Shown here one piece after another: positions 6,481 through 64,000 of a stretch of 64,000 nucleotides of DNA. The translations under genes and the position numbers were made by a program. The DNA comes from Eutreptiella sp. 'Long Island Sound 2002' (taxonomy: Eukaryota > Protista > Euglenida). The DNA lies in NCBI GenBank assembly GCA_964036045.1, contig OZ038378.1, positions 136,462,001-136,526,000 of the forward strand, in the 5' to 3' direction. The notes beneath the pieces were generated by a model. The model made no database searches. It was not told the DNA's origin and worked only from the letters and a program-made list of their open reading frames with translations. Each line of letters starts with the position of its first letter. Positions within the stretch are counted from its first letter, which is position 1.

Positions 6481-6488
6481 ATCCGCAC

Positions 6489-12400: not shown

Positions 12401-12575
12401 GAAGCAGTGACCAACTACCACGTTACGCCACCCCCCCCCCCTGGAAGACAGCCCTTCTCAAAACCCTGCAATGCAGCCCCTTAAAATGATCGCAATCAAA
12501 TTCTAAGAACGCGACTTTTCTTATTTTTGGCCGATGATGGTCGTTTTGGTGAACTAGGACCGTTTGAAGCGCTTT
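6489..12575. repeat. Tandem array of about 730-bp units (8 complete plus 1 partial), each with two stem-loops
   Basis: Unit starts (TTGTTCAAATCCCC and variants) at 6489, 7218, 7948, 8680, 9410, 10140, 10870, 11599 and 12329. Confidence 0.97.
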
Positions 12576-29535: not shown

Positions 29536-30588
29536 CTTTGCATATTGCTCAATATTGCCCATGGCATGTTTGCTCGCTAACAACGATGCTACAATTCGGA
29601 ATACAAAGTTAGGACATTGAACGTTTTTTTTTGTGTTTTAGCGGCCATGTAGGAATAGCAACGTCGCATTCTGTTTCGTCCGCAAGAGGTCACATGGTGT
29701 TGTTGTTTTTCTTTCCTCCCATGGCTTGTTGCAGCATAGGCGTACCATGTCCCATAATTTTGACATTTTTGCTGACTGTGTTGCTGTGTTTGCTCGCCTT
29801 GGGGACGATGAACCCGCACCACCACATTTTGTCCCGCTTGCGGCCCATCGCCACGGGCAAAGCAACCGCCTCGGGTTTTTGGTGGTGCGGTGTGTTGGTG
29901 CCGTGGACAACACCTTCTTGCGGCTATTCCCACATGCTTCCCTCCATAGTACACATCCTTACCGGGCATCGCGCGTCCCAGGGTTCCCACTCCCGTCAAA
30001 CATCCCAACGGTGGTTGCCGCCATATCCGTTCCGCCGCCCGCTGTGGCTCCTGTTGGGGCCCCTTTGCATTTTGCTCAATATTGCCCATGGCATGTTTGC
30101 TCGCTAACGACGATGCTACAATTCGGAATACAAAGTTAGGACATTGAACGTTTTTTTTGTGTTTTAGCGGCCATGTAGGAATAGCAACGTCGCATTCTGT
30201 TTCGTCCGCAAGAGGTCACATGGTGTTGTTGTTTTTCTTTCCTCCCATGGCTTGTTGCAGCATAGGCGTACCATGTCCCATAATTTTGACATTTTTGCTG
30301 ACTGTGTTGCTGTGTTTGCTCGCCTTGGAGACGATGAACCCGCACCACCACATTTTGTCCCGCTTGCGGCCCATCGCCACGGGCAAAGCAACCGCCTCGG
30401 GTTTTTGGTGGTGCGGTGTGTCGGTGCCGTGGACAACACCTTCTTGCGGCTATTCCCACATGCTTCCCTCCATAGTACACATCCCTACTGGGCATCGCGC
30501 GTCCCAGGGTTCCCACTCCCGTCAAACATCCCAACGGTGGTTGCCGCCATATCCGTTCCGCCGCCCGCTGTGGCTCCTGTTGGGGCCC
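29536..30588. repeat. Direct tandem duplication of about 526 bp
   Basis: GCTCAATATTGCCCATGGCATG at 29548 and 30074; the two copies are near-identical. Confidence 0.93.
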
Positions 30589-33113
30589 CAAGCGCAGGCC
30601 CTTTGGGGCACCACGTGAACCCCATAACAAACACTACGCAGACTGCACCCTCTGTTGCCCTCCCCGTGGGCACCGGCGCCAGTACCCTCAGCATCAGGCC
30701 ACGACAGCTGCCCGTTGTATCCCCCAAAGTAGCACCGGAGGCATCTATGGAACTCCCGTGCAGCAATAACCAAGCTCCGCCACATGACCGCCCGATTATG
30801 CATTCACTTCTTCCAAAATGTGGCACACCAAGCACGGTTGCACCCGTGGCACCCTCCAACACCTTGCCCGCCTCTACCCATGCCCCTGGGCCCATTGCTA
30901 GCCCGCAGCAAGTGCAAGTTGCATCCCGAACGTCCGCTACCCGTTTGCATCCCCCTGAGGATGAGGCGTGTACGGCACCTTTGAATGTCCTCCCCATGAA
31001 CACCATTCACAAAGCGCCGGGTGGCCACCATCGTACCGCAAGCCCTCGTCGGCCCAATACCACTTACTTTCCAATCGGGCGCAAGGATGACAAAATACGT
31101 GCCTCCACTGAGCCCCCACCGAAGGATGTGGCATCACCCACCCACGCGGAAGCCCACTCTTCCAATCAACGCACACCCTTGGCCCGTCACTTGGCTAGCC
31201 AAGTCCATGCCCCCTCTCCCCATCGTCGAGAAAATTTGGCACCACAAGTGGCATTAGAAGCACTTACCACACCCTCCAATCCCCAGCCAACCACAGGACC
31301 GCAAGTGACCATCCGAGTCCCTGCTTGCTCTTCAAGTTTGGTTCCACGTGCAGACCCATGGTTGAATATCCAAGTCCCCGTGCTCGGGAATGATTCTGGC
31401 GATGATGCGGCGTGGGAAGAATCACATGGAACGGCATTTAAGTCGTGGGTAAATGAGTGGCGCAAAGCAAAACAGGTGATTGCTTCCTCTGCATCTGCTT
31501 GGTGCGCTTTGCTAGAAGTACATGTGTGTCATACCGGACGGTTGCATACCTCCTTGTTTGTGTCTTTTGGTGGATGTAGCGGTCACCTGTCCCCTTGCAG
31601 GCCTCCAGGACAGTATCGCAATATGTGCGGGGCTCGAAGGATGAGTGTGTTCAGCATCAAGCATCCCATGCCAATAATGCCACCGCAAATGCATCACATG
31701 GTGCGCTGGACGCAGCAAAACCAAAGGTAAGCCTGGTGTGGTCCATATGCCATGGCGTCGCCTACATTTGTCATCGTACGATACCCTCATCATTGCTGCT
31801 TGTAGGCTACACAACTCCCTTGCGCACATGACGAATCAGTTGATGGTAAATCGTATGATCGTGGGTTTTCGTCTTGGGCACCATGTCAAGCCGGGGTCGT
31901 ACCGCACGCCACGTCAAGGGCAATGGTCATGTCCCACCTCTTGTTGTGATTGATTGTCTTTGTGAGCACCGTTGCCTCTACGGAACAACACTGCGTTTTC
32001 ACGTACCAACTGGTGGTGCAGCTTCAATGCCACCTTGCCCCTCATGTGACAACACCATAGGCAAAGTGCAGCGGGTTCGCATGCTCCTTTGACCGTGAAG
32101 CAATTGAGGTTGTTGACGAGGACATCCGTGAAGAAGAGAAGGATGAGGAGGAGGCGAACGCCGCGTCAAGGGCAACGGTCATGTCCCAGGTCATGTCCCA
32201 CTTCCTATTGTGACTGCGTTTATGAGCACCGTGGCTTGTACAGAACAACATTGCGTTGTCAGTGCCATTCATTTTTCAACTCGTGGTCTCACCACGTAGG
32301 GGGAACACCACCTTGCCCCCATGTAACAATACCAATGTGGTCAATGCATAGGCAAAACGCAGCGGGCTCGCATGCTTCTTGGACCGTGAAGCAATGGAGG
32401 TGGCTGACGAGGACATCAGTGAAGAAGAGGAGGATGAGGAGGATGAGGAGGATGAGGAGGATGAGGAGGATGGGGTTACAAATGACGAGGAGGATGTGCA
32501 AGTGGGACACAATGGCCAGAGAGTGTTTACGAACGCCGCGTCAAGGGCAACGGTCATGTCCCACCTCCTATTGTGACGGCGTTTGTGAGCACCGTGGGTT
32601 GTACGGAACAACATTGCGTTGTCAGTGCCATTCGTTTTTCAACTCGTGATCTCACCACGTAGCGAGAACACCACCTTGCCCCCATGTAACAATACCAATG
32701 TGGTCAATGCATAGGCAAAACGCAGCGGGCTCGCATGCTTCTTGGACCGTGAAGCAATGGAGGTGGCTGACGAGGACATCAGTGAAGAAGAGGAGGATGA
32801 GGAGAGTGACCAGGCTGAGGACCATGGGGTGGCAGGGGACGAGGAAGTGGATGACATGGATGCCCATGGCGTTGAGGAAGAACATGATGGCGAGGAGAGT
32901 GAGGGAGCGCTTACGAAGGGATTGCATGATTCCTCCACGGGTGCCTTGGCCATGGGTCTAGCGCAGTACCATGCCGTTTTGGGTCGGTCGTCCTTGCTGC
33001 CCCGCAGCAAAGCAGCTCCCCGCAGGCGGAAGAGAAGGGACGCGGTCAAATTGCGTTGCGTTAGGCGGCGCGTGGCCCCGGAATCAGACAGTGATGGCCT
33101 TGAAGGACTTTAA
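30252..33113 (+). CDS. Putative spliced gene of unknown function: Pro/Thr-rich 492-aa ORF plus downstream acidic exon(s) ending in a basic NLS-like motif
   Basis: ORF 30252-31730 ends at a GTAAGC donor, with a TTGTAG acceptor near 31805. Acidic segments FLDREAMEVADEDISEEEED follow CATAG acceptors (363-bp duplication, 32290/32653). The last copy ends with RRRKRR. Exon structure is not proven. Confidence 0.3.
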
Positions 33114-34591
33114 GTTCTTATACCACTGTCCGCAGGGTACAGCTGGCTTGCCTCTGCACTCTTTGCTGCACGGACGTGTTTTGCTTGCCCCGAAACGAGC
33201 ACATGATATCGTTCATTGTGGTTGGTAGACTGGCTGCCCTTTGGGGGCTTGAACCGACCGGCCAATGCCATTTCGTGTCTCTTCACAAAAGGAGAGGGAT
33301 AAAACTTTCTCCTTCGAGGCTGCCCCACACCCTGCAACCAAAGTGGTGTAGCCATTTTGTGACTTTTTATCCATGGAGTGCGATAAAACTTTCTCCTTTG
33401 CGCCCCCCCTCCCCAACACATCCTCCAACCGAAGTCGTGTAGCATAACCTGTAGCGGAGTCCAAGGTTCTTTCCAGCTTCGGTCATGATTTTGTGTCCCC
33501 ATTTGAGGGATCCAATGCCCCATGGGTGTCTCATGGATTGGCATCAACATTCATCTTCCTCGCGCATCCCGCTTTTGCGTGCACTTTGGCAGGGCATTGC
33601 ATGGGCTTCAATGCAACATACACCAACTTTGCATCGAGGAACTCCCGTCGTTGACAATAGGAAGCAACTTTATGTTGCAAAACTTACGTGAGCTCTTCCC
33701 ATATCAGTGACCCTCCATTGCAATTGTACCTAAACACCAGTTATCCTCATTTGCTACCTCTGTTCAATGCTTGTGTGTGCATTTGTCGTTGTCCAAGGCT
33801 CTCTTGGTGACTCTGGTGAATGCGTCCGGCAGTGTACACCTCAAAACGCAAGGTCCAAGTTGGTGCTGCTCATCCAGAAAGCCGTTCAACTGGTTAAGGA
33901 TTGGGTGGTTAAGGATTGGCCTCTGGCGTTACTTGTGGGTAGCGAGCGACCAATGCCTCTAGGTTTCTTGATCACATGCCGTTGTTCAGTGATCGGTTGT
34001 ACATGTAGCGATGTGCAAACCTATGTGTGTCTAGGGTGCGGGGCTGCGTGATGGTTATCAAGGGAGCAACACACAAAGCGGGGCTTTCTTGGTCACTAAG
34101 GTGAATGCTACCTGCGGTGTACACTCATCCACGAAGCAATTAACTGTTCTGATCGAGGGGATTTCACGGGGTTGTATTCCATGGATGTGCAACCCAAGCA
34201 CGAGATGGCGCACCTCCAATTCACTATCGCACATTTGCTCCCGGAGGTTACGCATGATGGGCCACTTGTGGCATCCGCCTGTTTATGGATTCAAAACATG
34301 CACAGACCTACCAGATTATCAGGGATGAAGATGGAACGGTCACCCACATGTGTCACGCACTGTTGATGCAAAAGACAAATGGGTCGTTGGTGATCGTTGT
34401 GGCTCCCCTTATGGTTGGTGCACTTTGCGAGGCATGGGAGAGGGTGTTATTGGTAATGGTGGCAATTGCTTGTCGCGGCGGCGTGGGAATTTGAACGTTG
34501 TCCTTGGGGACGGTTCCTTTTTTTTTTGCATGTTACTATGCTCCGTGTGCTTCACTAGCAACACCGCATTGCACAGCTTATTGTTCGTATT

Positions 34592-36475
34592 ATGTCGTGC
34601 TCTGCACTCAAAGGACAACGATTGGAGGTTGTGTTGAGGGGGTTGACACGGTGCGACATTCAGTCGCTTGTGCAGGCAGACGATGATGTCCGCACAGGGC
34701 TCGACTTCATGGTTCTTCATAACGTTGCTACCAAGATTGACATGCCTCGCGGACTTTACGAGCGCCAAGGCGATCGCCGCATTCGCCAGTGGAATGCCGA
34801 GGCAAAACCCTCGCGTCCCAACGGCTTCTCCTTGTGCCTCGACAAATCCGGTGTTTGTTTTAGCCGTGCTTTTGATGGTGAGCACGTCTTCCGGACGTGC
34901 GCCTCGCGCCTTGTTGAACGTCTTGTTGAGGGTTCGATGTATGTTGAAGTGGGCGGTTCCGTTTCGTCCTTCTGGGAAAAGGCTGAAGTGGACATCATCT
35001 CGGTGGACACAAGTGACCGTTTGATCGGATGGGCGCAAATCAAGGCCAACTACAATCCGTTCAATGTCTTCTCAGGGTGTGCCACAAAAGAGCTCGTGTA
35101 CTCCCCAAACGAATTCGGAGGGGCCCATCTTGCTGGCGTAAAGGTGATCTCATCGGTGTTCTCGGAGATTAGGGTGTACGAGGGATGCCGTGGATGCGAG
35201 GGTCTTGACGATGTTCGCGTCACCAAAGTGTGCAACAATTGTACTGCGGCCACCGGGAAACCGGCCAAATACTTCAGCTTCATGTTGAAAGTGGACATCA
35301 ATGGCCGCATTGAGAAAACCTTGTGGCGTGGCAAATCGGCGTCGCTGTACGTCATGCAGTACTTGGATGCCTGTGAAATGAATGATCCTTTTGCCATCGC
35401 CGATGCCATCGAGCGCGCGTTTCCCCGAGACCACCTCCTGGACCTCATCGTGTGGTACCGGACGCATATTGCGTCAGACGGGGTGGAGTGCCCAGTCAAC
35501 CTCTTGCATGTGGTTCTCAGCCGCCCCGCCAACCATGCCGATTGGCCTGTGCATCAACCGGTGTCTCTTCATGATTCCATGGGCTATGGTGACCTTCCGG
35601 AGGTTGCCTCACTCTCCGAAGCAGGCACCGGGCAAGGTGGGGTGGATGTGGATGGAGTGCTGCACCCGGTGGCGTTGAACGCATACAACCAGAGTTGTGG
35701 TACCAATGCCACTCTCCAAGGGCTCTTTGCTCTGCCGCCCTTGCGCGCTTCTATTTTGCAAACGGAGCGCTCCAATCGTGCCGTATGCCGCGCATTGGTA
35801 CGGTGTGTGGAAGCCTTGCAATCTGGGATTGCGCCGCGCCCGGAGTTCATCCGTGGTCTGCGCTTGCACACCATGCCTCTGCTACGCGCCGGGGAAGAGG
35901 GTTCCAACGTGGTGCACATGTGGAACGCTCTTGCCATGGGTGTGCCACTTGACTCTGTGCGGTTTGCGGTGCACCGCCAATATAGATGCCCTGTTGCCGG
36001 TTGCGAGATGGTCATTGAGGAAATGATGCCCGAAGTGCACCACATGCTTACGCTACCCCACAATATGGCAATTCAACAGGGCTTGGATGCCGCTCCCCAA
36101 GAAGTGCAACAAGTCAATGAGGGTTATCTTGTTCATTGTCCCGACCATTTCGCACAACAAGCAGTGGCATACACCCGCCGCTTCGCCGGACACAGAGATG
36201 GGCTTGTTATTGCGCGTGCGGCAGGTGGCCAGATTGCCATTCCCGCGGAGGTCACCTTTGCGAATAGCCGCTGGTCAGCCCGTAGTGTGGTTGAGCACCG
36301 CCCCAATCACTACGTAGCTTACGTCCGAGTGGACCAGCGGGATGGTGGAGCGCGCTACTTCGTGTGCGATGATGCTTCCATCACAGGCTGTGACAACGCT
36401 ATCCCAGACTGCCGGATGGTGTTGCTCTTCTTGCAACGCGAAGGTGGCCCGGAAAACGAGGTTCCGCGGCCCTAA
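34592..36475 (+). CDS. RPA70-like OB-fold (with C4 zinc ribbon) fused to a ubiquitin-specific protease (peptidase C19) domain
   Basis: YEGCRGC...CNNC...YFSFMLKVDING matches the RPA70 DBD-C pattern. USP Cys box NQSCGTNATLQGLFALPPLR (Cys 35696), His box NHYVAYVR (His 36308) and YFVCDD (Asp 36368). The frame extends 5' to a CACTAG acceptor at 34558, so upstream exons are likely. Confidence 0.8.
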   Translation: MSCSALKGQRLEVVLRGLTRCDIQSLVQADDDVRTGLDFMVLHNVATKIDMPRGLYERQGDRRIRQWNAEAKPSRPNGFSLCLDKSGVCFSRAFDGEHVFRTCASRLVERLVEGSMYVEVGGSVSSFWEKAEVDIISVDTSDRLIGWAQIKANYNPFNVFSGCATKELVYSPNEFGGAHLAGVKVISSVFSEIRVYEGCRGCEGLDDVRVTKVCNNCTAATGKPAKYFSFMLKVDINGRIEKTLWRGKSASLYVMQYLDACEMNDPFAIADAIERAFPRDHLLDLIVWYRTHIASDGVECPVNLLHVVLSRPANHADWPVHQPVSLHDSMGYGDLPEVASLSEAGTGQGGVDVDGVLHPVALNAYNQSCGTNATLQGLFALPPLRASILQTERSNRAVCRALVRCVEALQSGIAPRPEFIRGLRLHTMPLLRAGEEGSNVVHMWNALAMGVPLDSVRFAVHRQYRCPVAGCEMVIEEMMPEVHHMLTLPHNMAIQQGLDAAPQEVQQVNEGYLVHCPDHFAQQAVAYTRRFAGHRDGLVIARAAGGQIAIPAEVTFANSRWSARSVVEHRPNHYVAYVRVDQRDGGARYFVCDDASITGCDNAIPDCRMVLLFLQREGGPENEVPRP

Positions 36476-39928: not shown

Positions 39929-40690
39929 ATGGCTGCAATCTACGCCCTTATCAAAGAAATATGGCAGATGATATGTTTATTCCTCCTGCCGATTGAGGTC
40001 CTACTGTTGCCAGCCGCTGATGGAGTATTTGGCCGCATGAAGCTTGGCTCTCTGGTACTAGGAGCATGCATCACATTTCTGAAATTATCACTTGGCCAGG
40101 TTTGTGCACACCCAGAGCGGTTCGTGGCCTTCCTTGAGCGTCTGCGGAGTGTGGCTGGCATGATTTCTAGCGTCCTAGTTTCTGGCTCACAAATACTGCA
40201 ATGTTTACGCTTCGAACACTACCCTTGGTCCGACGTCGATGTGTTCTGCATGTCATCATGTTGGTGGGCCCTTTTCAGACACCTCACCGAGGTGCAGGGC
40301 ATGCGGCTAGTCTCCGTGTTGACAAAGAGCGACCTGGCGCAGATCCCGTATTTCCGTTCAGACCTGATTCACAGCATATTCAATTTTTATACGCCTGGCA
40401 AATGCTGCAATTTTCAAGTCATTGTTCCTCGGCGGTTTGTGAAGCACTTGGGCGAAATGGTTTTGGACTTTGACCTAAACATTGTGCAGAATTACTTTGA
40501 TGGAGTCATGTTATTTTCCGCATGGCCGAGAGCAGTCCTCAAAAAGCGGATGCGCGCTTGTTCTGGCAAGGAGGTGACCCAAGAGCGGGTCACGAAATAC
40601 ACGCGACGTGGGTATCACTTGGTCGACCGTGTGGCCATTGAAACACCAAGTAACTGGGTGACGGCGTCGGCAGATGGTGGGATCTCGTGA
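39929..40690 (+). CDS. F-box-like plus Pol-beta-superfamily nucleotidyltransferase-fold protein (paralog 1)
   Basis: N-terminal LIKEIWQMICLFL (F-box-like); VSGSQILQCL...SDVDVF (GS...DxD); DFDLNIVQNYFDG; RVTKYTRRGY. Colinear with ORF 57988-58725. Confidence 0.7.
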   Translation: MAAIYALIKEIWQMICLFLLPIEVLLLPAADGVFGRMKLGSLVLGACITFLKLSLGQVCAHPERFVAFLERLRSVAGMISSVLVSGSQILQCLRFEHYPWSDVDVFCMSSCWWALFRHLTEVQGMRLVSVLTKSDLAQIPYFRSDLIHSIFNFYTPGKCCNFQVIVPRRFVKHLGEMVLDFDLNIVQNYFDGVMLFSAWPRAVLKKRMRACSGKEVTQERVTKYTRRGYHLVDRVAIETPSNWVTASADGGIS

Positions 40691-49100: not shown

Positions 49101-52100
49101 CTTCAAGGCTTCGTCAATCCTGAACGCCATGTGCAGGAGGTCCTGAATGATCCCCATAGTACCCGCGCACACGATGTTACATGGATATCGTACGCCTTCA
49201 ACGTCCTTCTCAGCCGCCTTCTGGAACGCGGGCCGAGTGTCAGCATGGTCAAGCGCGGCCTACAGGCCGCACTCCGTGATTATGGAAGCCAACAAGAATA
49301 TAGTGAACGGTTTGGTGACACGCCTTTACCTGGCCTGTTGTATGACAAGGCAGATGCAGACCGTCATGTTGCCCTACTATGTGCAGCACGGAAGAAACTT
49401 GGTGACATGACGTACTTTGGAACAGAGACGTGCGACATGTCTCGCTTTCCTGGCGTGGCCCCGCTTTGGAAGAGAATCGTGGATCAAGGGTTGGACCCGC
49501 AGTATTTTGCTGTTGATCTTCAGCGCGCATGGTACCGATCGTCAAATTTGCTCAGACGCCACCTGATGGAGGACCCCGCCAAACCTTTGGGGAACATCAC
49601 TCACGTCTTCATCCATTGTGAATGGCAGACCGACAAGCCGAACTTGCATCATTTGCATTGGGGTGTGTGGACGGATGATCCCATACATCATGTGAATCCC
49701 GATGTGCGCCATGCCGCCATTCAAAGAGCCTTGGCTAGGCTATCTGCATCAGTGCCACATGCTTTTGACTGGCTAGGCGACGCCAGCGAAATAGCATATT
49801 GGGAGGCCCGGGCCGCCCTAGTGCAACCACATAAACATGGGGACAAGTGCAAGGTTCCCGTCCGCGATCCAACTCAGGTCGTCTTTCAATGCAAGGCAGG
49901 TATGCCAAAGCCCCTCCACAGCGATGTGGGTTTCACACCCCTTGAAGTCAAAATTCCAGATTCTTTGCGTGATCTATTGGTGGAGGAGGGTGTCGCATTT
50001 GAGGACACTGAGACGCCCGGGGTCGTGCGCCTTCACGAGGACTTGCAAGGAGGCATCTGGGAGCCCCCACGGTTGAAGAATGATGGCCTTATCAGCCAAT
50101 TTTGCCCGAGGGTGTTCGTGGCCACGAATGGCTGCCACTCCAATTGGCAGCTGGTCTATGGCAGCCGCTTCCTCCTGGCGTACTTAATTAAGTACCTTAG
50201 CAGCGAGGAGGAGCGTTCCGTGGTGCGGCTAACCCAACAAGGCCCACAAATTGTGAAGGCTACTGAGCATGATGAACACAAGCGCAAGCGGACAACGGGG
50301 CTACGCCTCAAGAGGAAATGCCACGGCCGCACCATTGGTGTGCCGGAGATGGTTTTCTATTGCCTCGGGTATTCTGCCGTGTACTGCACCTTCTCCTCCC
50401 GCCACGTCAACACGGGCACCCCGGAAGGTCGCTTCCGTGTGTTGCGCATGAAGTGGCGGCCTCAGCCACAAGAGAGCCCCATCTTCGGCCCAGCTCCTAC
50501 AGGAGGTCGCGGATGTCCTGACGACTCACGTTGTGGACGGCTAAACGGCGAACCAATGTTTCCAGACCGTGAGCCCACAACCGATCAGCGGCAATCGTAC
50601 ACGACTTGGGACATTGATCGCTATCATCCAGACGCGGTGCTACTGTATTGTCTTCGGCCCCCAGAAACGTACCCCCTGGAATTACGCGATTGGGCCGAGT
50701 TTGTTGTTACTGACATTCGTAACCGCAATCTTCGCAAGCTGTCATGGGACAAACGTCGGCAACGTGTTCTAGACTGGAAGACTCACGGGTTCTACGATTT
50801 GCGCTACAATCGCGTATATTTGCATTGGGAAATTCTTAGGCACCCTCACCTGTGGCGCACCGTCTTCCGCCGCTTGAATGACCTCCCCGCAGGACAGGCG
50901 TTGGCACACGCCTTGGATTACCCCAGCGACCGGGAGCCATGGATGTCGGTGGTCGTGAAGTGGGACATCCGAGTGCTCATCTTTGTGGAGCCACGTTTCC
51001 GACCTGGCTTTTGCGTGGATTGGTTGTGCCAGCGCATCTTGCGACTATCCGGGCCATTCGGAAATGAGGTGGCCAATAGAGACAGCTTCTTGGCGAGTAT
51101 GGGTTATGACTCCCTTCATGAGGCCCTCACATCATTGTTCGTCAATCTCTCCCTTGGAGAGTGGATCTTGGAGGAGGCATCCGGTTGGCCCATTGGCTTC
51201 AAAACTGTTTGGCGCTTGGTTATCCGTATTTGGGAGCAACAACGGAGCGGCACCACATACGAGGTGTCCATCCCCATGACGGACCGCGAGCTGGAGGCCG
51301 AGCATTGCCAAAAGTACACCGCCCTGTTGAACACAATCCAGCTTCGCCATTGCAACCGCATGTTGAAGGTCCCACCATGGAACCAGCATCCCGAACAAAC
51401 AGATGCAAGCTGGGCAGAGCAACAACGAAGTGCAAACTTCGTGAAGGATGATGTTCGTTTGATCATTCAAAGCCTGCAAGACATCAGCCCAGGAGACTGG
51501 GTCACAGACGGCTTGTACTACGCCCGCCCAATCTACATTAGTGGCCCACCTGGCACAGGAAAGTCTTGGGTAGCGCTCCAAGTTCTAAAATGGATTTGGA
51601 GTGCCACAATCCTCGGCCCAGAGCACTGGGAACTAACTGCCGTGGGCGCCATGTTTGCCCAAAATGGTGGCGGGGTTCACCTTCACCGCCTTTGCTTGTT
51701 TCGCCCCGGTAAGTCCAACCTTTGGACAACCCCTCAAGGTTTGGCGGCGACGGCCCTTAAACGGTTGAAGAAACACCCACACCTTGTTCGCCGTTTGCAA
51801 GAGCTCCTCGTGTTGTACATTGACGAGATGGGACAATGCGGGGCACCGTTGCTATTGGCGCTTCACCTGGTATTGTCGAAACTTCGGGGCACTGATTTGC
51901 CTTTCGGCGGTGTGTTTGTGTTTGCGGCAGGGGACCATTACCAAACCGAGCCTGTGGATATGGCCCCACCTTACACTTCGTGGTTCATGAAGTGCCACTT
52001 TCGCGTCATCACATTAAAGGAGCTGTTCCGCTCCCGCAACGATCAAACTTTGCAGACAATCATCAACTTGGCCAGGGTTCCCCAGCTGATGCCAGCTAGC

Positions 52101-53306: not shown

Positions 53307-56300
53307 GTTCTGGACATCCCATTTCTCTGTTGCGTTTAATGATGTGCGTCCGCAACCCTCCAACCGGGGCACAAGTGTTCCGTCACTTTACCCCACTGAG
53401 GGGTGCCTCGCAAGGTACACCCCAAGGACCTACCAACATTAGATCATGCATCGGCCGCCCTTTGCAGAGCGCCATTCCGTTGAGGGCTCCTACCCCCATT
53501 AGCCAGCTCCCTCTCAAGCCAAACCCGGGCCGACCTGTGTTACCCTTCTTCTTGTGTGTATCAATTGATCCTACCCTACATGATGCAATCTTACTGCCAC
53601 CGCTACCGCCCAACCCTCTGTCCAATTTGCCTACCCATACCTGTTGTGCGGATGGGTGCTCTTAACCCCCCAATCTCTATCCCGGCACAAGGAGTGCAAT
53701 GCCACACGTACCCCCCCACCCTGCCTCCAATCTGCAAGCCATCCATCTGCTTGGGGCTCTTGTAGCCCGTTCGCATTGCTGCTGTCATTGGTCCTCAGGT
53801 GGTTGGCTGATTGTCCTCCCTTTGGGAGCTTGAACCAACCACGTTTGCCAGCCCCCTTTCAAGACACGTCAGGCTGCTGTGCATTGCCCTAATGATTACC
53901 CTGTGATGCATTCTTGGTGTTCTTTGGAAAGAGAAACCTGGCCCCTCCCCTGCAAAGTCTTCTCCTGTGACATCTTGCCACGTTTCGTCTCACCATTCCA
54001 TGTCCCACCACCGCGGCCTGCCCTGCAACAAATAGTGTCTCAATCATGTCAAGGTGGTTGCCACAATAACCGCCCTTCGGGGGCATGAAGTGGATTGGCT
54101 TTTGCGTGGTGTATACCCGGTGGGCATGCTGTCACAACCCATTGCAAGCAAGCCCGCAGCATTTCCTAAGAGCTAGCCTCCACCCTCCCTCTATTCCGTC
54201 TTCCTGGTTAGGGTTAGGGTTGAGAGCTGTGCTCCAACTGCCAGTGCATTGTTGTTTATTGTGCGTTACATGCAGCGGGCCAATATTACACCAACCGTCA
54301 TCGTGTCATGTTTTGCACACCCCCCTCCCCCTCATGTAGGGCAACGATCATCGGTTCTTTGCATGACAATACATGCAGGTTGCACGCAAATTGCCGCATG
54401 GCCGCGGGAGGACAGAATTATGGCCTGTGCAAGGACACACTTAATTCCCTTCCACCTGTTCCATCCTTCTTTGTGCACCCCCCCTCCCCCCCCCTGCGCA
54501 AGTACCGCCTTGTCTAAGTACCAGGACCCGGTCTGACTGTCACTTTTACCGATTTTTCTAACCTCGGCTTTTAGGTTACAAAGTAGGCAAACCGTGATTG
54601 TGTGCCGATTGTGTAGGGAAAGAGGGGCTGTTCCATGCTTGTTAGGAGTCCTCCTGCTTGTAACAACATTCTGCTTGGTACTGCACCCCACTGCACCCCA
54701 CTGCCCTTTGTTTTGGTGTGATTTTCAGCCATGACTAATGTCTATACCCTTGGCTTGGCTGTCACGTAGATCCGGTCCAGTGGTGAGCATGCGCCTGCCA
54801 CTATCATTGGTCGTTGTAATGGGGAAGATTCCACAACCGAGGAATTGCAACTTATGAGCGCCCATACGCCATACGCCAGCCCCACCAAAACCGCCCTGAT
54901 GCAACTATTGTGCTTAGGGTGAGGGATGGGCAGGTTTTCGGGACATGCATTCTTTGGTACTCTGTGTTGCGCGGTTGCACCGCCTTGTCTAAGCGCCGGG
55001 ACCCGGTCTGACTGTCAGTTTCCTGACCTGGCTGGTGCTTGCGCAAGGAGAGGGGGTTACCCAGTTACGCTGGCGGTGAGGTTCTGTTTTAGTGCCGCTT
55101 CATGCGCTCTTGTTCCGGCCACTGTTTTGGGTGCTGGTCTGATATAGTGCAGGTTGCTTACATTTTTCTGAACATGCGCACTCCAGCCCAGTTTGCAGCA
55201 ATTTTGTTGCTTGCTGATCATTCGTCCGTGTGTTCGGCTGCAAAACATACACCCCCGCTAGTCACATTCTTATCTCCTCGATGCAAGGGCAAATGATACA
55301 TACAAACGCATGCGTACAGCACATCACAGCATGCCACAGTAGTACAGTAGTACAGTGCAGTACAGAGCATGCTACATCATGACACTGCAAGGTGCCACCC
55401 CACAGCACCCCACCATTCCCCCACCTACCCTGCCTACCCTCGTTGTTCCCCCACCCACCGCCCCCATGGTTGGAGTGCCCCAACGTATCCCACCTACCAC
55501 ATCTCTCCCCAACCCACCTCAGTCTACTCAACTCAAACTCAAGGCAACCCAACCCAAGCCACCCCCAAGCCACCTCATGTTGTGAGTGAACGCAACGTGT
55601 GAGTGAACCCCAGTTTGAGCTTGACAGTGTCCAGATTCATGGCTGCACGTGGATGTTCAGCCAGATGGCGCATGTGTGACCACCTCTATGACGTGTGGTC
55701 ATGGCCCATCAAATGCATTTCGTTTTGTTATGCAGAACCTTGACCATTCATGTTGGCACTATTGAACACTTAACACAGAGGAGGCGTACCAAACCATCAC
55801 CCCTCGGTTGTCCAATTAGCATTGGGTGAAAAAGGCAAACCAACCCTTTGTTGGCTACTTCTCTGATCATTACCTTCCCCCATTGCATCCCCGACTACTA
55901 ATGTAGACGGGGTTTGCGCAAGCGCAATGTGAGGTTAGTGGCCAAACCCAATCAGCGGTGGTTTTTGTCATGGTACGTGCGGAACTTCAGTTCTGTTCCT
56001 TCTCAATGTGAAAACCTCATTCTTGCACTTTGCAAAATATATATTGGACATGGCATGTGATACGTGTTTTGGCCCGGTCACAGTCCGTTGAGACAAGAAG
56101 GTGGGTTTCACGTCAATGCAGTTTGGTTGTCCTCATGACAGCCACCATCTCAAATGGGAAAGATTGCTTTCGTTTTGCGTGTTCCTTTCTGCATGTTGTG
56201 CAATTCAGCTCTTGCCCTTGTGCTTTTGTCGCGGAGCGCTTTTTTCCTCACCGATGTGGGAGCCCCCAAGGTCTTGGGGTTATGTAGCCACCTTGCCCAC

Positions 56301-57987
56301 ATGTGGGACACTTTTTTTACTTCCTTTCCAATGTGGGCACACCCAAGACACCAAGGGTTATGGAGCCACTTTGCCCACGCTTTCATTTCGTCCCCAATGC
56401 GGGGGCCCCCAAGAGAGCAAGGGTTATGTAGCAGCTTTGCCCGGACCTGGGCCCATGTTTTTTTTCCTCCCGGTGTGCGGACTCCCACGGTAGCAGGGGT
56501 TATGTACCCACTTTGCCCACGCTTTTCTTTCGTTCCCAATGCCTGGGCCCCCAAGATAGCAGGGTTTACGTAGTCAGTTTGCCCTCATCTGGGCCACATT
56601 TTTGAATTCCTCCCTGATGTGCGGAGTCCCAAGACCCTGAGGTGGGGAGTCCCAAGACAGCACGGCGTATGTAGCCACCTTGCCCACACCTTTCTTTCGT
56701 CCCCAGTGCCACGCCCCCCCCAAAAAGCAGGGGTTATGTAGCCATTTTCCTCACATGAGGGCCACGTTTTCGAATTCCTCCCCGATGACGGAACCCCCAA
56801 GCCAGCAGGGTTATGCATCCACTTTGCCCACATGTGCTCCCTCTCCGATGAGGGAACCCCAGAGAAAGCAGGGGTTATGTAGCCACTATGCCCACATGTT
56901 GGCCACATTTTTTCTTTCCTCTTTGATGTGGGAAACCCATGGAAGCACGGGGATCACATGTTGGCCACGTTTTTGTTTCCTCCCTGATCTGGGAACCCCC
57001 AGGACACCAGGGGTTGTCTGGCCACTTTGCCCACACTTTTGTTTCGTCCCCAATGCTAGGCCCCCCAAGAAAGCAGGGGTTCTGTAGACATTTTCCCCAC
57101 ATGAGGGCCACGTTTTCGAATTCCCCCCCGATGACGGAAGCCCCAAGCCAGCAGGGGTTATACATCCACTTTGCCCACATGTGCTCCCTCCCCGATGAGG
57201 GCACCCCAGAGCCAGCAGGGCTTATGTAGCCACTATGCCCACATGTTGGCCACAGGGGGATCACATGTTGGCCACGTTTTTGTTTCCTCCCCGATGTGGG
57301 AACCCCCAAGACACCAGGGGTTATCTGGCCACTTTGCCTGCACTTTCGTTTCGTCCCCAATGCTAGGCCCCCCAAGAAAGCAGGGGTTATGTAGCCATTT
57401 TGCCCACATGTGGGCCATTTTTTGATTCAGTCCCCGATATGGGGACCCCCAAGATGGTAGGGGTTATGTAGCCACTCTGCTCACAAGTGGGCCACAATTT
57501 TTTTTCCTCCCCGACATAGGAACCCCTAATAGTGCAGGGGCTATGTGGCATTTTTGCCCACATAGGGGCCACGTTTTTGTTTCCTTCCCAATGCAGGGAC
57601 CCCAAAGTAGCGGGGGTTATGTAGCCACCTTGCCCACATGTGCGGCACAGGTTCATTTTCTCCCCGATGTTTAAAACCCCCAGGATGGCATGGGTGATGT
57701 AGCCGCTTTGCTCATATGTGGCCTAGGTTTTTATTTCCTTTCCGATGTGGGGACCCCAAGACAACAAGCGTTATGTAGCAACGTTGCCCACATGTGGGCC
57801 AATTTTTGTTTCCTCCCCAATGTGGGGTCCCAAGAAAGCAGTGGTCATGCTATCTTTAGGCCACCTTACATACTTCATGCATGCGTGTGCATGCGTGTAT
57901 GCATTGGCGGTACGTTCGACGGTCACGTCCAATGATTTGAGAATGCATACACCAACAAACTTAGGGTCTCTCTTCCTATCACATCTC

Positions 57988-58725
57988 ATGATGAACGCAG
58001 CATGGGCAATGCCGTCGGAAATTTGGTGCTTGATATGCTTATTTCTCGTCCCCATCGATGCCATGCCACTATTGCGCATATCCCGACTTGTTGGCAAACG
58101 TTTGGGACGGTCGATCTTGTACAACTTTGAAAGATTCCTAATCCGAAGGTTGAAGGACTTCATTCCATTTCCACATGACTTTCTTGACTTATTGTCGGAT
58201 TGCATTGCGGAGGGTGTGGCCAAGGTGATTGTGTCTGGATCAAGCATATTGGAAGGCCTTCAGTATGAGACATATGGCGGTGATCTCGATCTTTATTGCG
58301 TTCCCTCGATGATGCCTACTGTATATCAACACCTTGTCAATGGTCAACATTTGGAACTCATCTCAATGTTTAGCAAACGGGACCTTGGCGAATATGCGCA
58401 TTTAAATAACTTGAATTCCATTTGGAATTTTGCATTTGCACGGTTTGTCCCCTACGTTGTACAACTGATCGTGGTAGAAAATGAGACGGAGCCCGTGAAC
58501 AACGTTGTCCTTGGCTTTGACTTCAATGTTGTAAAGAACTCCTTTGATGGAGTCAATCTATTTTGCGCAGCACCTGGATCGGTACATCAAAAACGAGTTC
58601 ATTTAACTCAAGGGCGAGAAATGAAGTGGGGCCGCGTGGAAAAATACCTCAAAAGGGGATACACTTTTGTAAACTGCCTGTCGAAAGACCACATTACTTT
58701 GCACATGGTTGTTAACAAGCTCTAA
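57988..58725 (+). CDS. F-box plus Pol-beta-superfamily nucleotidyltransferase-fold protein (paralog 2)
   Basis: MPSEIWCLICLFLVPIDAMPLLRISRL (F-box); VSGSSILEGL...GDLDLY; FDFNVVKNSFDG; RVEKYLKRGY. Likely start is ATG 57988 or 58009. Confidence 0.75.
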   Translation: MMNAAWAMPSEIWCLICLFLVPIDAMPLLRISRLVGKRLGRSILYNFERFLIRRLKDFIPFPHDFLDLLSDCIAEGVAKVIVSGSSILEGLQYETYGGDLDLYCVPSMMPTVYQHLVNGQHLELISMFSKRDLGEYAHLNNLNSIWNFAFARFVPYVVQLIVVENETEPVNNVVLGFDFNVVKNSFDGVNLFCAAPGSVHQKRVHLTQGREMKWGRVEKYLKRGYTFVNCLSKDHITLHMVVNKL

Positions 58726-59200
58726 TGCTTTGGCATGCAAGTGCACTGAGTGCTTGAGTTTTTCTCATTCGTCACATTGGATAAGTGTGTCCATGCGATG
58801 TGTATTTTATGCCCATCAGGCTGTGCTATATATATTGATATGCCCATGCACACCTGATTCTTGCAAGTTGCAGCATGGGTCCATGGTGCTATGCATGCAA
58901 GGGTAGGCCAATGAGTCTCGATGTTACTCTCATTGAATTTGAGAGGGCGAGTGTGAAACAATAGGATCTATTGTGATGCACGCTTGACTCTGGTGCTGGT
59001 CACTGTGGTGGGGTGTCAAAGGTCTATACCTAGCTCCATCCCGACAAAAGCCCAAGGTGCATGCAATGCAGAGCCATGAGCTTCCCATTGCTTTCCCTTG
59101 ACGTCATGCCTTGGACACCGCCAGTCTTTAGATGTCATGGCATGTCTTCAGCAAGCATACATGTAGAGGGTAGAAAGTACCCTTGGACCAATCTGATGTC

Positions 59201-59845
59201 ATGCTCCATGGTGTTGCGTGTGACAAATTGACTGAATTGACGATGCTGTCCACTTGTTTGTGCATTAGGAAGATTGTTACAATGTCCGCTAGCAAGATTG
59301 AAATGCAATTTGATGGTGTTGCAGCCGCCCGTGCCTATTGGGCTGCTCAAAAGTGCAAGTGTGGGCAACCCTACGAGGTTAGATATTGTGCATCTAAGGC
59401 AAATTATGGTTTTCTCCATCCCCACAAGGATGATGAGTGCTGCAAATCATGTGATGCCATTCATGGGTCATGCATAGCTGCCGAGGATGGCCTACTGAGA
59501 TGTGAATGTGATGAAGTACCACAGGAGGTTGCATGTAGGAACACCAAGAACGGCGGCCGCTCATTCTACGCTTGCGAAGCATGTGACGTTTTTCTGTGGG
59601 TAGATCCCAACATAACTCTTACACCAATCAAGACACCCACCAAGTCACCGAAAAGAAAGGCATCAGACATCGCTTCGAGTAGTCCGTCTGTCACAAGTCC
59701 GGCGGGTCACGCCATGGATGGTGCAAGTCCAAAGAAACCCCGAGTCAAAGGATCAAATCACATTGTTGGAGGCAATTGTGAACGCTACGAACTAACAATG
59801 CCAATTCGCCCACCTTTTTACTCCCCGATGACACAGCTTATGTAG
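59201..59845 (+). CDS. GRF zinc-finger protein
   Basis: CECDEVPQEVACRNTKNGGRSFYACEACDVFLWVD (59501-59605) fits the GRF finger. A second partial copy CKCGQPYEVRYCASKANYG lies upstream. The tail is S/T/P-rich and basic. Confidence 0.75.
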   Translation: MLHGVACDKLTELTMLSTCLCIRKIVTMSASKIEMQFDGVAAARAYWAAQKCKCGQPYEVRYCASKANYGFLHPHKDDECCKSCDAIHGSCIAAEDGLLRCECDEVPQEVACRNTKNGGRSFYACEACDVFLWVDPNITLTPIKTPTKSPKRKASDIASSSPSVTSPAGHAMDGASPKKPRVKGSNHIVGGNCERYELTMPIRPPFYSPMTQLM

Positions 59846-61499
59846 CCATTGTGCTTACATGTCGGCCACATTTTTGTTTCCTCCCCGATGTGGGGATCCT
59901 CCACGACACAAGGGTTACTTAGCCACTTTGCCCACATGTGGGCCACGTTTTAAATTACTCCCCAATATGGGGACCCCGAGACAATAGGGGTTATGTAGCC
60001 ACTCTGCTCACAAGTGGGCCACATTTTTGTTTCCTCGCCGATATGGGGACCTCCAAGACAACAGGGTTATGTAGCCATTTCGCCCACATGTTGGTCACGC
60101 TTTTGTTTCCTCCCCAATGTGGGGACCACCAAGACAACAGAGGCTGTGCACGCGCTTTGCCCACATGTGGGCCACGTTTCGATTTGGTCCCCGTGTAGAT
60201 GTACTCTGCTCACATGTGGGCCACATTTTTGTTTCCTTTCTGATATGGGGACCCCCAAGACAACAGGGGTTATGTAGCCACGTTGCCCACATGTGGGCCA
60301 CATTTTTATGTTGCTCCCCATGTGGGGACCCTCAAGAACATGAACACAATTGATTGCAAAAAATGTGCATTGGCGGGAGATGAAAAAAGGAGTCCGGCAT
60401 AGTGCTGCGTAGAAAGGGCAACCATGAGGTTGTGGAGTGAACGAGGCACAATGTAGGCAAGAGTTATAAGATCCCCGTTGCGACGATGTTTTCCACAAGC
60501 ATGTGCACCCTTACGAGGCCTTGGTGGTCCAGGAAGTTGGCCGAAAGACGTTCGCATAAGGAGTATACCCCCAATGTCATGGCTGGAGGGACACAGCATG
60601 CTTGTCACACTGGATGAACATGCCCGTGTGTCACCAATGAGCATATAGTTGGGCGCGTGATGGCTGACATGGTTGTGATCAAAACTATACTCCCGGGCAA
60701 TGAACTTTGCAACATGTGGGCTGATTTTGGTTTCCTCCCCAATGTGGGGTCCCAAGAAAGCAGTGGTGATGTAGCCAATTTGCCCACCTCCTCGATGACA
60801 CAGCGTATGTAGCCATTGTGCTTACATGTCGGCCACATTTTTGTTTCCTCCCCGATATGGGGACCCCCAAGACACAAGGGTTACGTAGCCAATTTGCCCC
60901 AATTTGGGGACCCTTGAGACAGCAGGGGTTATGTAGCCACTGTGCTCACGTGTGGGCCACGTTTTGTTTCCTCCCCGATATGGGGACCCCCAAGACGACA
61001 GGGGTTATGTAGCCATTCCGCCCACATGTTGGTCAAGCTTTTGTTTCTTGCCCGATGTGGGGACCGCCAGAACAACAAAGGTTACGAACCTGCTTTGCCC
61101 ACATGTGGGCCACGTTTTGATTTAGTCCCCAATATGGGGACCCCCAAGACAGCAGGGGTTATGCAGCCAATCTGCTCACATGTGGGCCACATTGTTGTTT
61201 TCCCTCCGATATGGGGACCCCCAAGACAACAGGGGTTATGTAGCCACATTGCCCACATGTGGGCCACATTTTTATGTTGCTCCCCATGTGGGCACCCCCA
61301 AGAACGTGAACACAATGGGATGCAAAAAAGGTGCATTGGCGGGAGATGAAAAAAGGAGTCCAGCGTAGTGCTGCATAGAAAGGGCAATGATGAGGTTGTG
61401 GAGTGAACGAAGCACAATCTAGGCAAGAGTTATAAGATCCTTGTTGCGACGATGTTTTCCACAATCATGTGCACCCTTACGAGGCCTTGGTGGTCAAGG

Positions 61500-63200
61500 A
61501 AGTTGGCCGAAAGACGTTCGCATAAGGAGTATACCCCCAATGTCGTGGGTGGAGGGACACAGCATGCTTGTCACACTGGATGAACGTGTCCGTGTGTCAC
61601 CATCGAGCATATGGTTGGGCGTGTGATGGGTGACATGGCTGTGATCAAAACTATACCCCTATGCACTGAACTTTGCAACATGTGGGCCAATTTTGGTTTC
61701 CTCCACAATGTGGGGTCCCAAGAAAGAAGTGGTGATGCACTCAATTTCCCCATCTTTTTACTCCTTGCTTACGTAGCCATTTCACTTACATGTCGGCCAC
61801 ATTTTTGTTTCCTCCCCGGTGTGGGGACCCCCCAAGACAGCACGGAGTATGTAGCCATGTTGCCCACATGTTGGTCGGGCTTTTGTTTACTCCCTGATGT
61901 GGGGACCGCCAAGACAACAGACGTTATGCACCCGCTTTGCCCACATGTGGGCCACGTTTTGATTTAGTCCCCGATATGGGGACCCCCAAGATGGCAGGGG
62001 TTATGTAACCACTCTGCTCACATGTTGGTCAGCTTTTGTTTCTTGCCCGATGTGAGGCCTTGGGGGTCAAGGAAGTTGGCCGAAAGACGTTCGCATAAGG
62101 AGTATACCCCCAATGTCGTGGGTGGAGGGACACAGCATGCTTGTCACACTGGGTGAACGTGTCCGTGCGTCACCAATGAGCATATGGTTGGGCGTGTGAT
62201 GGCTGACATGGCTGTGATCAAAACTATACCCCTATGCACTGAACTTTGCAACATGTGGGCCAATTTTGGTTTCCTCCACAATGTGGGGTCCCAAGAAAGA
62301 AGTGGTGATGCACTCAATTTCCCCATCTTTTTACTCCTTGCTTACGTAGCCATTTTACTTACATGTCGGCCACATTTTTGTTTCCTCCCCGGTGTGGGGA
62401 CCCCCCAAGACAGCACGGAGTATGTAGCCATGTTGCCCACATGTTGGTCGGGCTTTTGTTTACTCCCTGATGTGGGGACCGCCAAGACAACAGACGTTAT
62501 GCACCCGCTTTGCCCACATGTGGGCCACGTTTTGATTTAGTCCCCGATATGGGGACCCCCAAGATGGCAGGGGTTATGTAACCACTCTGCTCACATGTTG
62601 GTCAGCTTTTGTTTCTTGCCCGATGTGAGGCCTTGGGGGTCAAGGAAGTTGGCCGAAAGACGTTCGCATAAGGAGTATACCCCCAATGTCGTGGGTGGAG
62701 GGACACAGCATGCTTGTCACACTGGGTGAACGTGTCCGTGCGTCACCAATGAGCATATGGTTGGGCGTGTGATGGCTGACATGGCTGTGATCAAAACTAT
62801 ACCCCTATGCACTGAACTTTGCAACATGTGGGCCAATTTTGGTTTCCTCCACAATGTGGGGTCCCAAGAAAGAAGTGGTGATGCACTCAATTTCCCCATC
62901 TTTTTACTCCTTGCTTACGTAGCCATTTTACTTACATGTCGGCCACATTTTTGTTTCCTCCCCGATATGGGGACCCCCCAAGACAGCACGGAGTATGTAG
63001 CCATGTTGCCCACATGTTGGCCTGGCTTTTGTTTACTCCCTGATGTGGGGACCGCCAAGACAACAGACGTTATGCACCCGCTTTGCCCACATGTGGGCCA
63101 CGTTTTGATTTAGTCCCCGATATGGGGACCCCCAAGATGGCAGGGGTTATGTAACCACTCGGCTCACATGTTGGTCAGCTTTTGTTTCTTGCCCGATGTG
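61500..63200. repeat. 573-bp higher-order repeat, about 3 copies
   Basis: Near-identical ORFs at 61611, 62184 and 62757 (period 573). Confidence 0.92.
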
Positions 63201-64000
63201 GGGACCGCGGAGACAACAGAGGTCATGCACCTGCATGCCCACATGTGGGCCACGCTTTCATTTAGTCCCCGATATGGGGTCCCACAAGATGGCAGGGGTT
63301 ATGTAGCCACTCTGCTCACATGTGGGCCACATTTTTGTTTCCTCCCCGATATGGGGACCCCCAAGACAGCAAGGATTATGTAGCCACGTTGCCCGCATGT
63401 TGGTCAGGATTTTGTTTCTTGCCCGATGTGGGGACCGCCAAGACAACAGAGGTTATGCACCTGCATGCCCACATGTGGGCCACGCTTTGATTTAGTCCCC
63501 GATATGGGGACCCACAAGATGGTAGGGGTTATGTACCCACTCTGCTCACATGTGGGCCACATTTTGTTTCCTCCCTGATATGGGGACCCCCAAGACACCA
63601 GTGGTTATGTAGCCACGTGGCTCACACTTTTTTTTTGTCCCCCCATGCGGGGGGCCCCAAGACAGCAGGGGTTATGTTGCCACTTTGCCCACGTACGGGC
63701 CACATTCCTCACCGATGTGGCGGCCGCCAAGATGGATTCTTTATTTCCTTCCCGATGTGGGAACCCCTGAGACAACACGGGTTATGTGGCCAGGGCGCCA
63801 CATGTGGGCCACATTTTTTATTTCCTCCCCGATGTGGGAACCCCCGCGACACGAAGGGTTATGTAGCCACCTTGCCCACTTGTGGGCCACCTCTCATGCT
63901 GCCTTGTGGTCTGAAGCGTTGGGGACCCCCCACACAGCAGGGGTTATGTAGCCACCTTGCCCACTTGTGGGCCACTTTTGATGCTGCCCCCCGCTCCAAA

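Follow-up and report, generated by a model that had tools for sequence, protein, structure and literature searches.

A probable Helitron-like transposase gene encoding a giant Rep–helicase–GIY-YIG protein, and its association with a putative deubiquitinase gene, in Eutreptiella

The stretch of DNA analysed here, referred to as the window, comprises 64,000 nucleotides of contig OZ038378.1 from the euglenid Eutreptiella sp. 'Long Island Sound 2002' (positions 136,462,001 to 136,526,000, forward strand). Its central feature is an intact plus-strand open reading frame (ORF) at 43140-53306, which encodes a 3,388-amino acid (aa) RepHel transposase-like protein, a Rep endonuclease fused to a helicase, with a C-terminal GIY-YIG nuclease domain. 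This ORF is probably the intact, autonomous-type gene of a Helitron-like rolling-circle transposon of a divergent and essentially undescribed lineage, with a ubiquitin-specific protease (USP) gene at 34592-36475 serving as its partner in trans. The observations that carry this assignment are the protein domains and their order, their conservation among relatives, purifying selection on the coding sequence, dispersed copies in one genome, and the linkage of the USP and RepHel genes at two loci. Helitrons are usually described as carriers of a RepHel gene, optionally accompanied by an APE endonuclease, RPA and OTU. An earlier interpretation made from the letters alone, the sequence-only reading, had proposed one giant virus-like Helitron spanning 30250-64000, with one set of genes acting on single-stranded DNA and another targeting ubiquitin pathways. 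Its observations were partly confirmed and its interpretation was partly supported; the Helitron-like identity, with an intact RepHel gene linked to a deubiquitinase, has held.

Domain organization of the giant ORF

The frame at 43140-53306 stays open for 10.2 kb without interruption. A chance ORF is rejected because of this length together with the existence of conserved homologues. Full-length relatives include P0001 (2,663 aa, 47% identity), P0002 (2,543 aa, 41%) and P0012 (3,197 aa, 31%). The translation predicts an HUH/two-tyrosine (Y2) Rep domain placed N-terminal to a PIF1-like superfamily 1B (SF1B) helicase within the one polypeptide. The sequence-only reading was right that Rep, PIF1 and GIY-YIG are real domains, as motifs, PDB and Pfam matches attest, but it counted them as separate genes, and all three lie in a single protein.

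The putative Rep domain (aa ~2085-2362; 49392-50225, plus strand) was assigned from its motifs and its relatives. The motifs are F2093.T2095, H2171-L-H2173 (49650-49658) and Y2348-LIK-Y2352 (50181-50195), the last followed by EER. In an alignment of 13 sequences, consisting of the window protein and 12 relatives, the F.T, H-L-H and Y...Y motifs are invariant columns. Pfam Helitron_like_N is matched by six of the 13 aligned sequences, with a best E-value of 2.9e-8, and P0034, P0038 and P0059 score above, at, or at most 1 bit from its 28.9-bit cut-off. A search of PDB with a profile of the Rep alignment returned nothing meaningful.

The helicase (51507-52814, plus strand) exhibits a Walker A motif, GPPGTGKS, from aa 2802 and a Walker B motif, YIDEMG, from aa 2893. 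It matches PIF1 in PDB with E=9.5e-13 and Pfam PIF1 with 23.1 bits, and the family profile matches human PIF1 (1.5e-33) and the Helraiser helicase (7lcc; 9e-22). The C-terminal SLX1/URI-like nuclease domain (52962-53189, plus strand) belongs to the GIY-YIG superfamily, as it combines the catalytic motif set with a Pfam match of 27.7 bits, above the cut-off of 22.6. With the family profile the match to SLX1 has an E-value of 1.4e-11, and Y3281, Y3292, G3294, R3302, H3306, N3307 and E3346 are invariant.

As predicted from its translation, the transposase would be one giant polypeptide in which a variable N-terminal region and a (pseudo-)deubiquitinase precede the HUH/Y2 Rep, the PIF1 helicase and the GIY-YIG nuclease. 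A hydropathy scan of the N-terminal extension (aa 271-688; 43950-45203, plus strand) shows about 5-6 hydrophobic segments resembling transmembrane segments. This extension is subfamily-specific: it is present in the copy at locus L006 and absent from P0001 and P0002, in which homology starts from aa ~717-775. The Cys/His-rich region that follows (aa ~717-1010; 45288-46169, plus strand) is common to P0001 and P0002 (tblastn, 31% identity), and P0001 has a weak DUF5763 match at the equivalent place. Further along, a 19-aa tandem duplication read from the translation (46377-46502, plus strand) carries the acidic sequence SSDDEIVEI twice. This resembles a SUMO-interacting motif (SIM), and P0002 has EDEILEI in the acidic tract aligned with it. 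The SIM-like motifs that the sequence-only reading had counted among its ubiquitin-directed functions are visible, as sequence, within this duplication.

Between the duplication and Rep lies a probable degenerate USP, or pseudo-USP (aa ~1514-1780; 47679-48479, plus strand), which was recognised from its position and a MAFFT alignment. Relative to Rep it occupies the place of the true UCH domain of P0012 (Pfam, 1e-20). The Cys box is replaced by PQNAITAALHSLL and the His box by TWVAVV, such that Cys is changed to Ala and His to Trp. The pseudo-USP named by the sequence-only reading has this position and these replacements in its favour, but comparison with the USP of ORF 34592 by hhalign gave a weak alignment with a probability of 1.6%.

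Relatives, genomic copies and the linked putative deubiquitinase gene

An exhaustive HMMER search with residues 2001-3200 of the giant ORF retrieved 394 proteins at E<1e-10. The long representatives listed from it, one per 50%-identity cluster and at least 1,500 aa in length (n=58), were scanned with HMMs built here; 45 of the 58 have Rep, helicase and GIY-YIG in that order, and the remaining 13 lack only the GIY-YIG. P0001 and P0002 possess Rep, PIF1 and GIY-YIG, an architecture conserved also in P0019, P0034 and P0038, and P0012 possesses UCH, PIF1 and GIY-YIG at the level of Pfam, with a Rep region that aligns with the family. The deubiquitinase modules found N-terminal to Rep are a true UCH/USP in P0012 and an OTU protease in P0066 (2.6e-9).

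In all 20 of the clusters sampled, the members occur only in unannotated Logan, ENA or JGI assemblies (metagenome or SRA), with none in NCBI or UniRef, and the sole names attached to them are 'predicted GIY-YIG superfamily endonuclease' and 'hypothetical protein'. Scans of IMG/VR and of JGI metagenomes returned only generic PIF1 helicases and one short contig with helicase and GIY-YIG (L010). The cluster of a distant member, P0063, is represented on three metagenome scaffolds of 22.2-23.9 kb; on the 23.8-kb scaffold L051 (ENA ERZ23498577 scaffold_386) the neighbouring ORFs have no Pfam match.

The searchable literature mentions a GIY-YIG domain in a Helitron-like element only for the Sphagnum family HelenSM92 (PMC11417382). 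UCH, OTU, F-box-associated, Ulp1 and RPA domains have already been reported in Helitron-like elements (PMC11417382), and Helentron-encoded VTD deubiquitinases have been shown to be enzymatically active (PMC9741609). Because Helitrons with OTU, VTD, UCH, F-box-associated and Ulp1 domains are on record (PMC9741609, PMC11417382), the combination of a Helitron with ubiquitin enzymes is already known, whereas a giant polyprotein of conserved Rep-Hel-GIY-YIG architecture is undescribed. The lineage to which the giant ORF belongs is broad, divergent and essentially undescribed. The undescribed system anticipated by the sequence-only reading is thus upheld for the lineage and not for the deubiquitinases, nor for the occurrence of a GIY-YIG as such, of which one published case exists.

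The close relatives all derive from a single HiFi metagenome assembly (ENA ERZ25074135). One of its contigs, L007, is the window's own locus or allele (98.5% identity), and the window itself appears to form part of a 2.6-Mb contig under an ENA source. RepHel copies are present on at least six contigs of this assembly with 31-89% aa identity; the gene exists in multiple dispersed copies in one genome. The sole near copy is that of L006 and L047, which show 97.9% mutual identity that extends into the flank. It is decayed and split into several ORFs, with 84.5% nucleotide identity to window 46790-53307 and 72.7-75.4% identity to part of window 43974-46555, and an rve/chromo long terminal repeat (LTR) element disrupts it in L047. 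A second subfamily, in L009 and L048, has 46-70% aa identity to the window protein, and P0155-P0158, P0010 and P0011 mark additional copies. The decay seen in other copies comprises frameshifts, inversions, a 3.9-kb insertion and the LTR insertion.

Homology between the window and L006/L047 is limited to the ORF and ends 1 nt past the stop codon. The synonymous divergence (Ks) between the window and L006 is 0.46-0.87; therefore, neutral flanks would not align, and the end of homology at the stop codon is uninformative on the ends of the element. The derivation of termini from copy alignments, which had been suggested along with the sequence-only reading, fails at this divergence. The same comparison is informative on selection. 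The ratio of nonsynonymous to synonymous divergence (Ka/Ks) is 0.03-0.05 in the pre-Rep segment and Rep and 0.09 in PIF1; the pseudo-USP region (0.15), GIY-YIG (0.17) and the Cys-rich region (0.29) follow, and the N-terminal hydrophobic extension has the highest value, 0.52. These values across the segments indicate that the entire giant ORF evolved as coding sequence.

Several features accompany these loci. The rve/chromo LTR element occupies L047 1-3000, and LTR- and LINE-type neighbours are found at other loci. A segment of ~550 nt, partly duplicated in the window, lies at window 17159-18173, L006 12524-13260 and L047 11901-12695; in L006/L047 it follows the RepHel stop codon by 0.8 kb, but in the window it precedes the RepHel start by 25 kb.

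The USP gene upstream of RepHel (34592-36475, plus strand) encodes 627 aa, of which the C-terminal half is a probable divergent USP, recognised by a sub-threshold Pfam UCH match, by alignment with the paralogues P0152 and P0153 and by its His box. Both the Cys box (C369) and the His box are present and are conserved in P0152, and the His box, HYVAYVR..CDDA, matches that of the true P0012 UCH. The only return from a profile search of this gene against PDB was a weak match to the Cys box of USP14. The N-terminal half has a conserved core (aa ~163-322) with a CxxC...CxxC motif, which we take to resemble an RPA-like OB fold; the resemblance could not be confirmed. As an RPA/OB domain this half has no Pfam match at E≤1 and none in PDB, the AlphaFold2 model of the ORF was unusable (pLDDT 29), and the RPA-like OB gene of the sequence-only reading is not confirmed.

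The USP gene was detected at three loci, L007 (the window's own allele), L008 and L009. At L009, the USP paralogue (P0153) precedes the RepHel paralogue by 3.7 kb in the same orientation, and the divergence from the window is similar for both genes (45-65% and 46-70% aa identity). Since chance adjacency is very unlikely given two loci, similar divergence and only three USP loci detected, a two-gene USP-RepHel unit, ~19 kb long in the window, is supported.

Neighbouring ORFs, tandem repeats and the extent of the element

Between 30.2 and 59.8 kb, every ORF that reaches 220 aa lies on the plus strand, in agreement with the sequence-only reading. An orphan 253-aa ORF at 39929-40690 (plus strand), earlier called an F-box protein, is 35-36% identical to 57988-58722. 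The latter belongs to a paralogue at 57988-58725 (plus strand; pairwise comparison) located in a 2-kb island with arrays of 77-bp satellite on either side, and a longer frame of this paralogue, ORF 57745-58725, begins within the satellite. Neither ORF has a Pfam match at E≤1, a meaningful match in PDB (those returned are chance matches) or a homologue outside the window, and the AlphaFold2 model of ORF 39929 was unusable (pLDDT 37). Neither an F-box profile nor an F-box fold was found for them, and the two F-boxes of the sequence-only reading are not confirmed. The island is shared by a 220-aa ORF (59183-59845, plus strand) in which the GRF-type zinc-finger motif C..C...GR.FY.C..C..F.W is visible; the GRF finger named by the sequence-only reading reaches E=9e-4 against Pfam Zn_ribbon_GRF, but its 19.7 bits are under the cut-off of 25.9. 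On the upstream side, a 492-aa Pro/Ser/Ala-rich low-complexity ORF (30252-31730, plus strand; no Pfam match) starts inside a 526-bp duplication (29625-29924 / 30151-30450).

Tandem repeats dominate the downstream part of the region, where ~6 kb of 56.2-64 kb is 77-bp satellite. Repeat analysis shows one array of ~77-bp (and 142-bp) units at 56250-57850, and a second at 59830-64000 with 573-bp and 966-bp higher-order repeats that reaches the window end. The satellite contains GCCCACATGTGGGC, a perfect 14-nt palindrome, and the array gives spurious ORFs on both strands. No short hairpins were found in 53.3-56.3 kb or 40.7-43.2 kb, and Rfam and tRNA scans of the window yielded nothing; a dinoflagellate spliced leader is absent. 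Host-side ORFs, and neighbours at other loci, likewise gave no match when scanned with Pfam.

Directly upstream of the studied region, the window holds a ~11-kb minisatellite (18272-29240) with a 28-nt unit, consensus CATCCCGTGTTTAGCCGCTCGTGCGGCA, which the ~550-nt segment directly precedes. Tandem Repeats Finder (TRF) counts ~350 copies over 18272-28137, with degenerate copies to ~29.2 kb; the minisatellite has a GC content of 63% and a strong T>A skew, and is present in the allelic contig L007 too. A satellite of ~715-730 bp, with a poly-C tract per unit and a 52-nt palindrome, CCGCTAGGCT..GTTTTTGTGGGGCTTGGCCCACAAAAAC..AGCCTAGCGG, occurs at window 5392-12600 and at L048 18371-22460. The L048 array lies 6 kb downstream of a RepHel copy and is 92-94% identical to window 5392-6485; this satellite could be shared heterochromatin or element-linked. 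In the window, L005-L009 and L047-L050, poly-C tracts of 10-32 nt and poly-T tracts of 13-56 nt number in the dozens on the RepHel-coding strand, with poly-G and poly-A almost absent, and both GC and AT skew are negative over almost the whole window. A CaMK-like protein kinase (HRDLKPEN, DFGLAK) has exons at window ~400-750 on the minus strand, separated by a GT-AG intron of ~220 nt; this is the host kinase that the sequence-only reading had contrasted with the nearly intron-free genes.

The sister subfamily, to which P0012 belongs, shows how large such units can be. Contigs L005, L049 and L050 each carry one intact copy (3,197-3,206 aa) with a UCH domain within the ORF, and the three have ~25 kb in common at 89-97% identity and then different flanks. 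In L049 coordinates the unit extends over ~1.5-26.4 kb and contains poly-C-punctuated repeats, ~5.5 kb of 187-bp satellite, a small DnaJ (J-domain) ORF (7.9e-11) just upstream of RepHel, the 9.6-kb RepHel ORF and, in the 6.8 kb downstream of it, further ORFs. The 5' limit is beyond the ends of the available loci, and the 3' border, seen in one copy pair only, has no canonical motif. None of the window's accessory ORFs is present in these units. Past the 3' border of the L050 unit is an ORF with a LINE-like Exo_endo_phos domain (L050 26173-27591). This lineage has therefore built large composite units in this genome, with accessory genes and tandem repeats inside them.

How much of the window is mobile bears directly on the choice between explanations. 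The element probably covers at least 34.6-53.3 kb (~19 kb) and may be larger; the interval 30250-64000 as a single element is not supported. It is unlikely that all of this interval or more, from ~17 kb to past the window end, forms one giant composite Helitron-like element with cargo and internal satellites. The hypothesis stays alive because the ~25-kb P0012 units exist, with their 5.5-kb satellite, DnaJ ORF and 6.8 kb past RepHel; the co-orientation of the long ORFs and the recurrence, at window 17159-18173, of the 550-nt segment found downstream of RepHel in L006/L047 also speak for it. Set against these points, the F-box-like ORFs, the GRF ORF, ORF 30252 and the window satellites were found at no other RepHel locus examined, the F-box-like ORF is without a homologue anywhere outside the window, no ends are defined, and at Ks ~0.6 the sole near copy is uninformative. 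From the giant element of the sequence-only reading, the recurrence of the USP gene beside RepHel in L009 is what survives. A conserved gene order among copies, for which it proposed a test, is likewise seen for USP-RepHel at the window and L009, but not at L008, where the USP paralogue stands without RepHel.

A minimal element, of which only the RepHel gene and short ends would be mobile, the USP gene, other ORFs and satellites being unrelated neighbours in a repeat-rich, transposon-accumulating region, strikes us as somewhat unlikely. It would agree with the confinement of window-L006/L047 homology to the ORF, with the L008 paralogue, and with the P0001 and P0002 contigs (8-9.6 kb), in which nothing recognisable adjoins the ORF. 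Yet neutral flanks would not align at Ks ~0.6 in any case, it is very unlikely that chance placed USP beside RepHel at two independent loci of equal divergence, and the sister subfamily clearly moves far more than its ORF. Strong purifying selection between old paralogues and the lack of recent near-identical copies of the window subfamily would also suit an immobile, domesticated or host-maintained multigene family of Helitron origin, selected for a cellular function such as DNA repair. Such domestication is improbable in view of the decay of other copies, the three intact 89-97% identical copies with different flanks in the sister subfamily, and the retention of every catalytic motif needed for transposition. 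An integrated virus or virus-like episome, argued for by the sequence-only reading from large size, co-oriented intronless ORFs and domains of host-manipulation type, is extremely improbable and was rejected: no hallmark genes, whether capsid, packaging ATPase, polymerase or integrase families, were matched in any ORF scanned, and IMG/VR yielded no close relatives, its generic PIF1 helicases having neither Rep nor GIY-YIG beside them.

The assignment of 43140-53306 to an autonomous-type Helitron-like gene with a USP partner is preferred over these alternatives, and a number of observations weigh against it. The window protein itself has no match to Pfam Helitron_like_N at E≤1, and its Rep homology depends on motifs and relatives. 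The USP ORF matches Pfam UCH with E=3e-4 and 20.8 bits, below the cut-off of 23.9; the active USP of the sequence-only reading is backed by its Cys and His boxes but not by this score. At L008 a USP paralogue is present, but no RepHel occurs within 10 kb. The locus keeps 95% identity to L009 until ~100 nt past the USP stop codon and then diverges, which argues against obligatory linkage; the break point has no recognisable terminus. The short sequences upstream of the RepHel copies in L006 and L047 have no USP gene. A close copy (>90% identity) of the window element was not found, recent mobility is unproven, and neither termini, a target-site pattern, an empty site nor a circular form was found.

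Proposed mechanism and comparison with known systems

We infer the mechanism of transposition and each catalytic activity from the analogy to Helraiser and Helentrons. Rep would use its tyrosines to nick one strand at the element end and to bind the nicked strand covalently, the PIF1 helicase would peel this strand off in the 5'->3' direction, and the second Rep tyrosine would close a circular intermediate. For Helraiser, a circular intermediate is established. The SLX1-like GIY-YIG nickase may fill the role of the Helentron APE, either in target or donor nicking or in the resolution of branched or hairpin DNA. A USP-type deubiquitinase would be supplied in trans by 34592-36475, the copy within the giant ORF being degenerate, and in P0012 (USP) and P0066 (OTU) it would act in cis from inside the ORF. 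Its function would most likely be to shield the transposase or replication factors from ubiquitin-dependent removal, a role that has been proposed for the OTU/VTD deubiquitinases of Helentrons (PMC9741609).

The broad family swaps the APE nuclease for a conserved GIY-YIG nickase and changes the type of deubiquitinase. Two such independent replacements argue that both activities are real requirements of eukaryotic rolling-circle transposition, and both requirements are open to biochemical testing. The ~25-kb sister units with their built-in satellites bear on the seeding of tandem repeats by Helitrons and on the growth of DNA transposons. A wider generalization, which we put forward tentatively and with more doubt than conviction, is that the window harbours an intact, potentially autonomous member of a major unrecognised lineage. 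The RepHel-GIY-YIG polyproteins of this lineage would be giant (2,000-3,600 aa) and would exchange USP/OTU modules, and in this eukaryote the lineage would build 20-35 kb cargo units with internal satellites and host-interaction genes (USP, DnaJ, and possibly the F-box-like and GRF orphans). If true, these units would be the rolling-circle counterpart of other giant cargo-carrying eukaryotic transposons.

Canonical Helitrons (HLE1) have 5'-TC...CTRR-3' ends, a 3' hairpin and an A^T target, and HLE2 elements have short terminal inverted repeats, palindromes and a T^T target; neither generates a target-site duplication. The giant ORF resembles Helraiser and canonical Helitrons in having an HUH (HxH), two-tyrosine Rep fused to a PIF1-like helicase. 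It differs from Helraiser in that the Rep region is without a sequence-level match, the Rep-helicase linker is ~430 aa, extra domains are present and the length is ~2.3-fold greater; the 5'-TC and CTRR-3' ends of HLE1 were not identified here. With Penelope-like and other GIY-YIG-bearing elements it shares a URI/GIY-YIG nickase as an accessory DNA-cleaving module, whereas Penelope-like elements are reverse-transcriptase elements with no Rep or helicase relationship.

The organization resembles in outline that of Helentrons (HLE2), which encode RepHel with a C-terminal APE endonuclease, often with an OTU or VTD deubiquitinase in the same ORF. The two share a single long frame in which a deubiquitinase precedes Rep, followed by the PIF1 helicase and, at the C-terminus, a nuclease; in both, accessory genes (RPA-like or other) lie upstream, and some relatives here have an OTU (P0066). 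In contrast to Helentrons, the nuclease here is an SLX1-like GIY-YIG rather than APE/Exo_endo_phos, the deubiquitinase is of USP type, degenerate in cis and encoded by a separate upstream gene, and the ORF is about twice as long. No Pfam match to Exo_endo_phos was found in the giant ORF or in the full-length relatives scanned. DUF6570, an HLE2 marker (PMC11417382), is absent from the Pfam matches of the giant ORF and seven full-length relatives. A UCH/USP upstream of Rep and associated with RepHel is known from HLE2 subgroups c/d of lungfish and axolotl (PMC11417382), from which, by their description, the present family differs in possessing the GIY-YIG. HelenSM92 of Sphagnum magellanicum, an HLE2 element, likewise has a GIY-YIG beside RepHel (PMC11417382). 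By description only, the GIY-YIG of HelenSM92 is a captured domain in one moss family, whereas here it is a conserved C-terminal module, found in 45 of the 58 long representatives.

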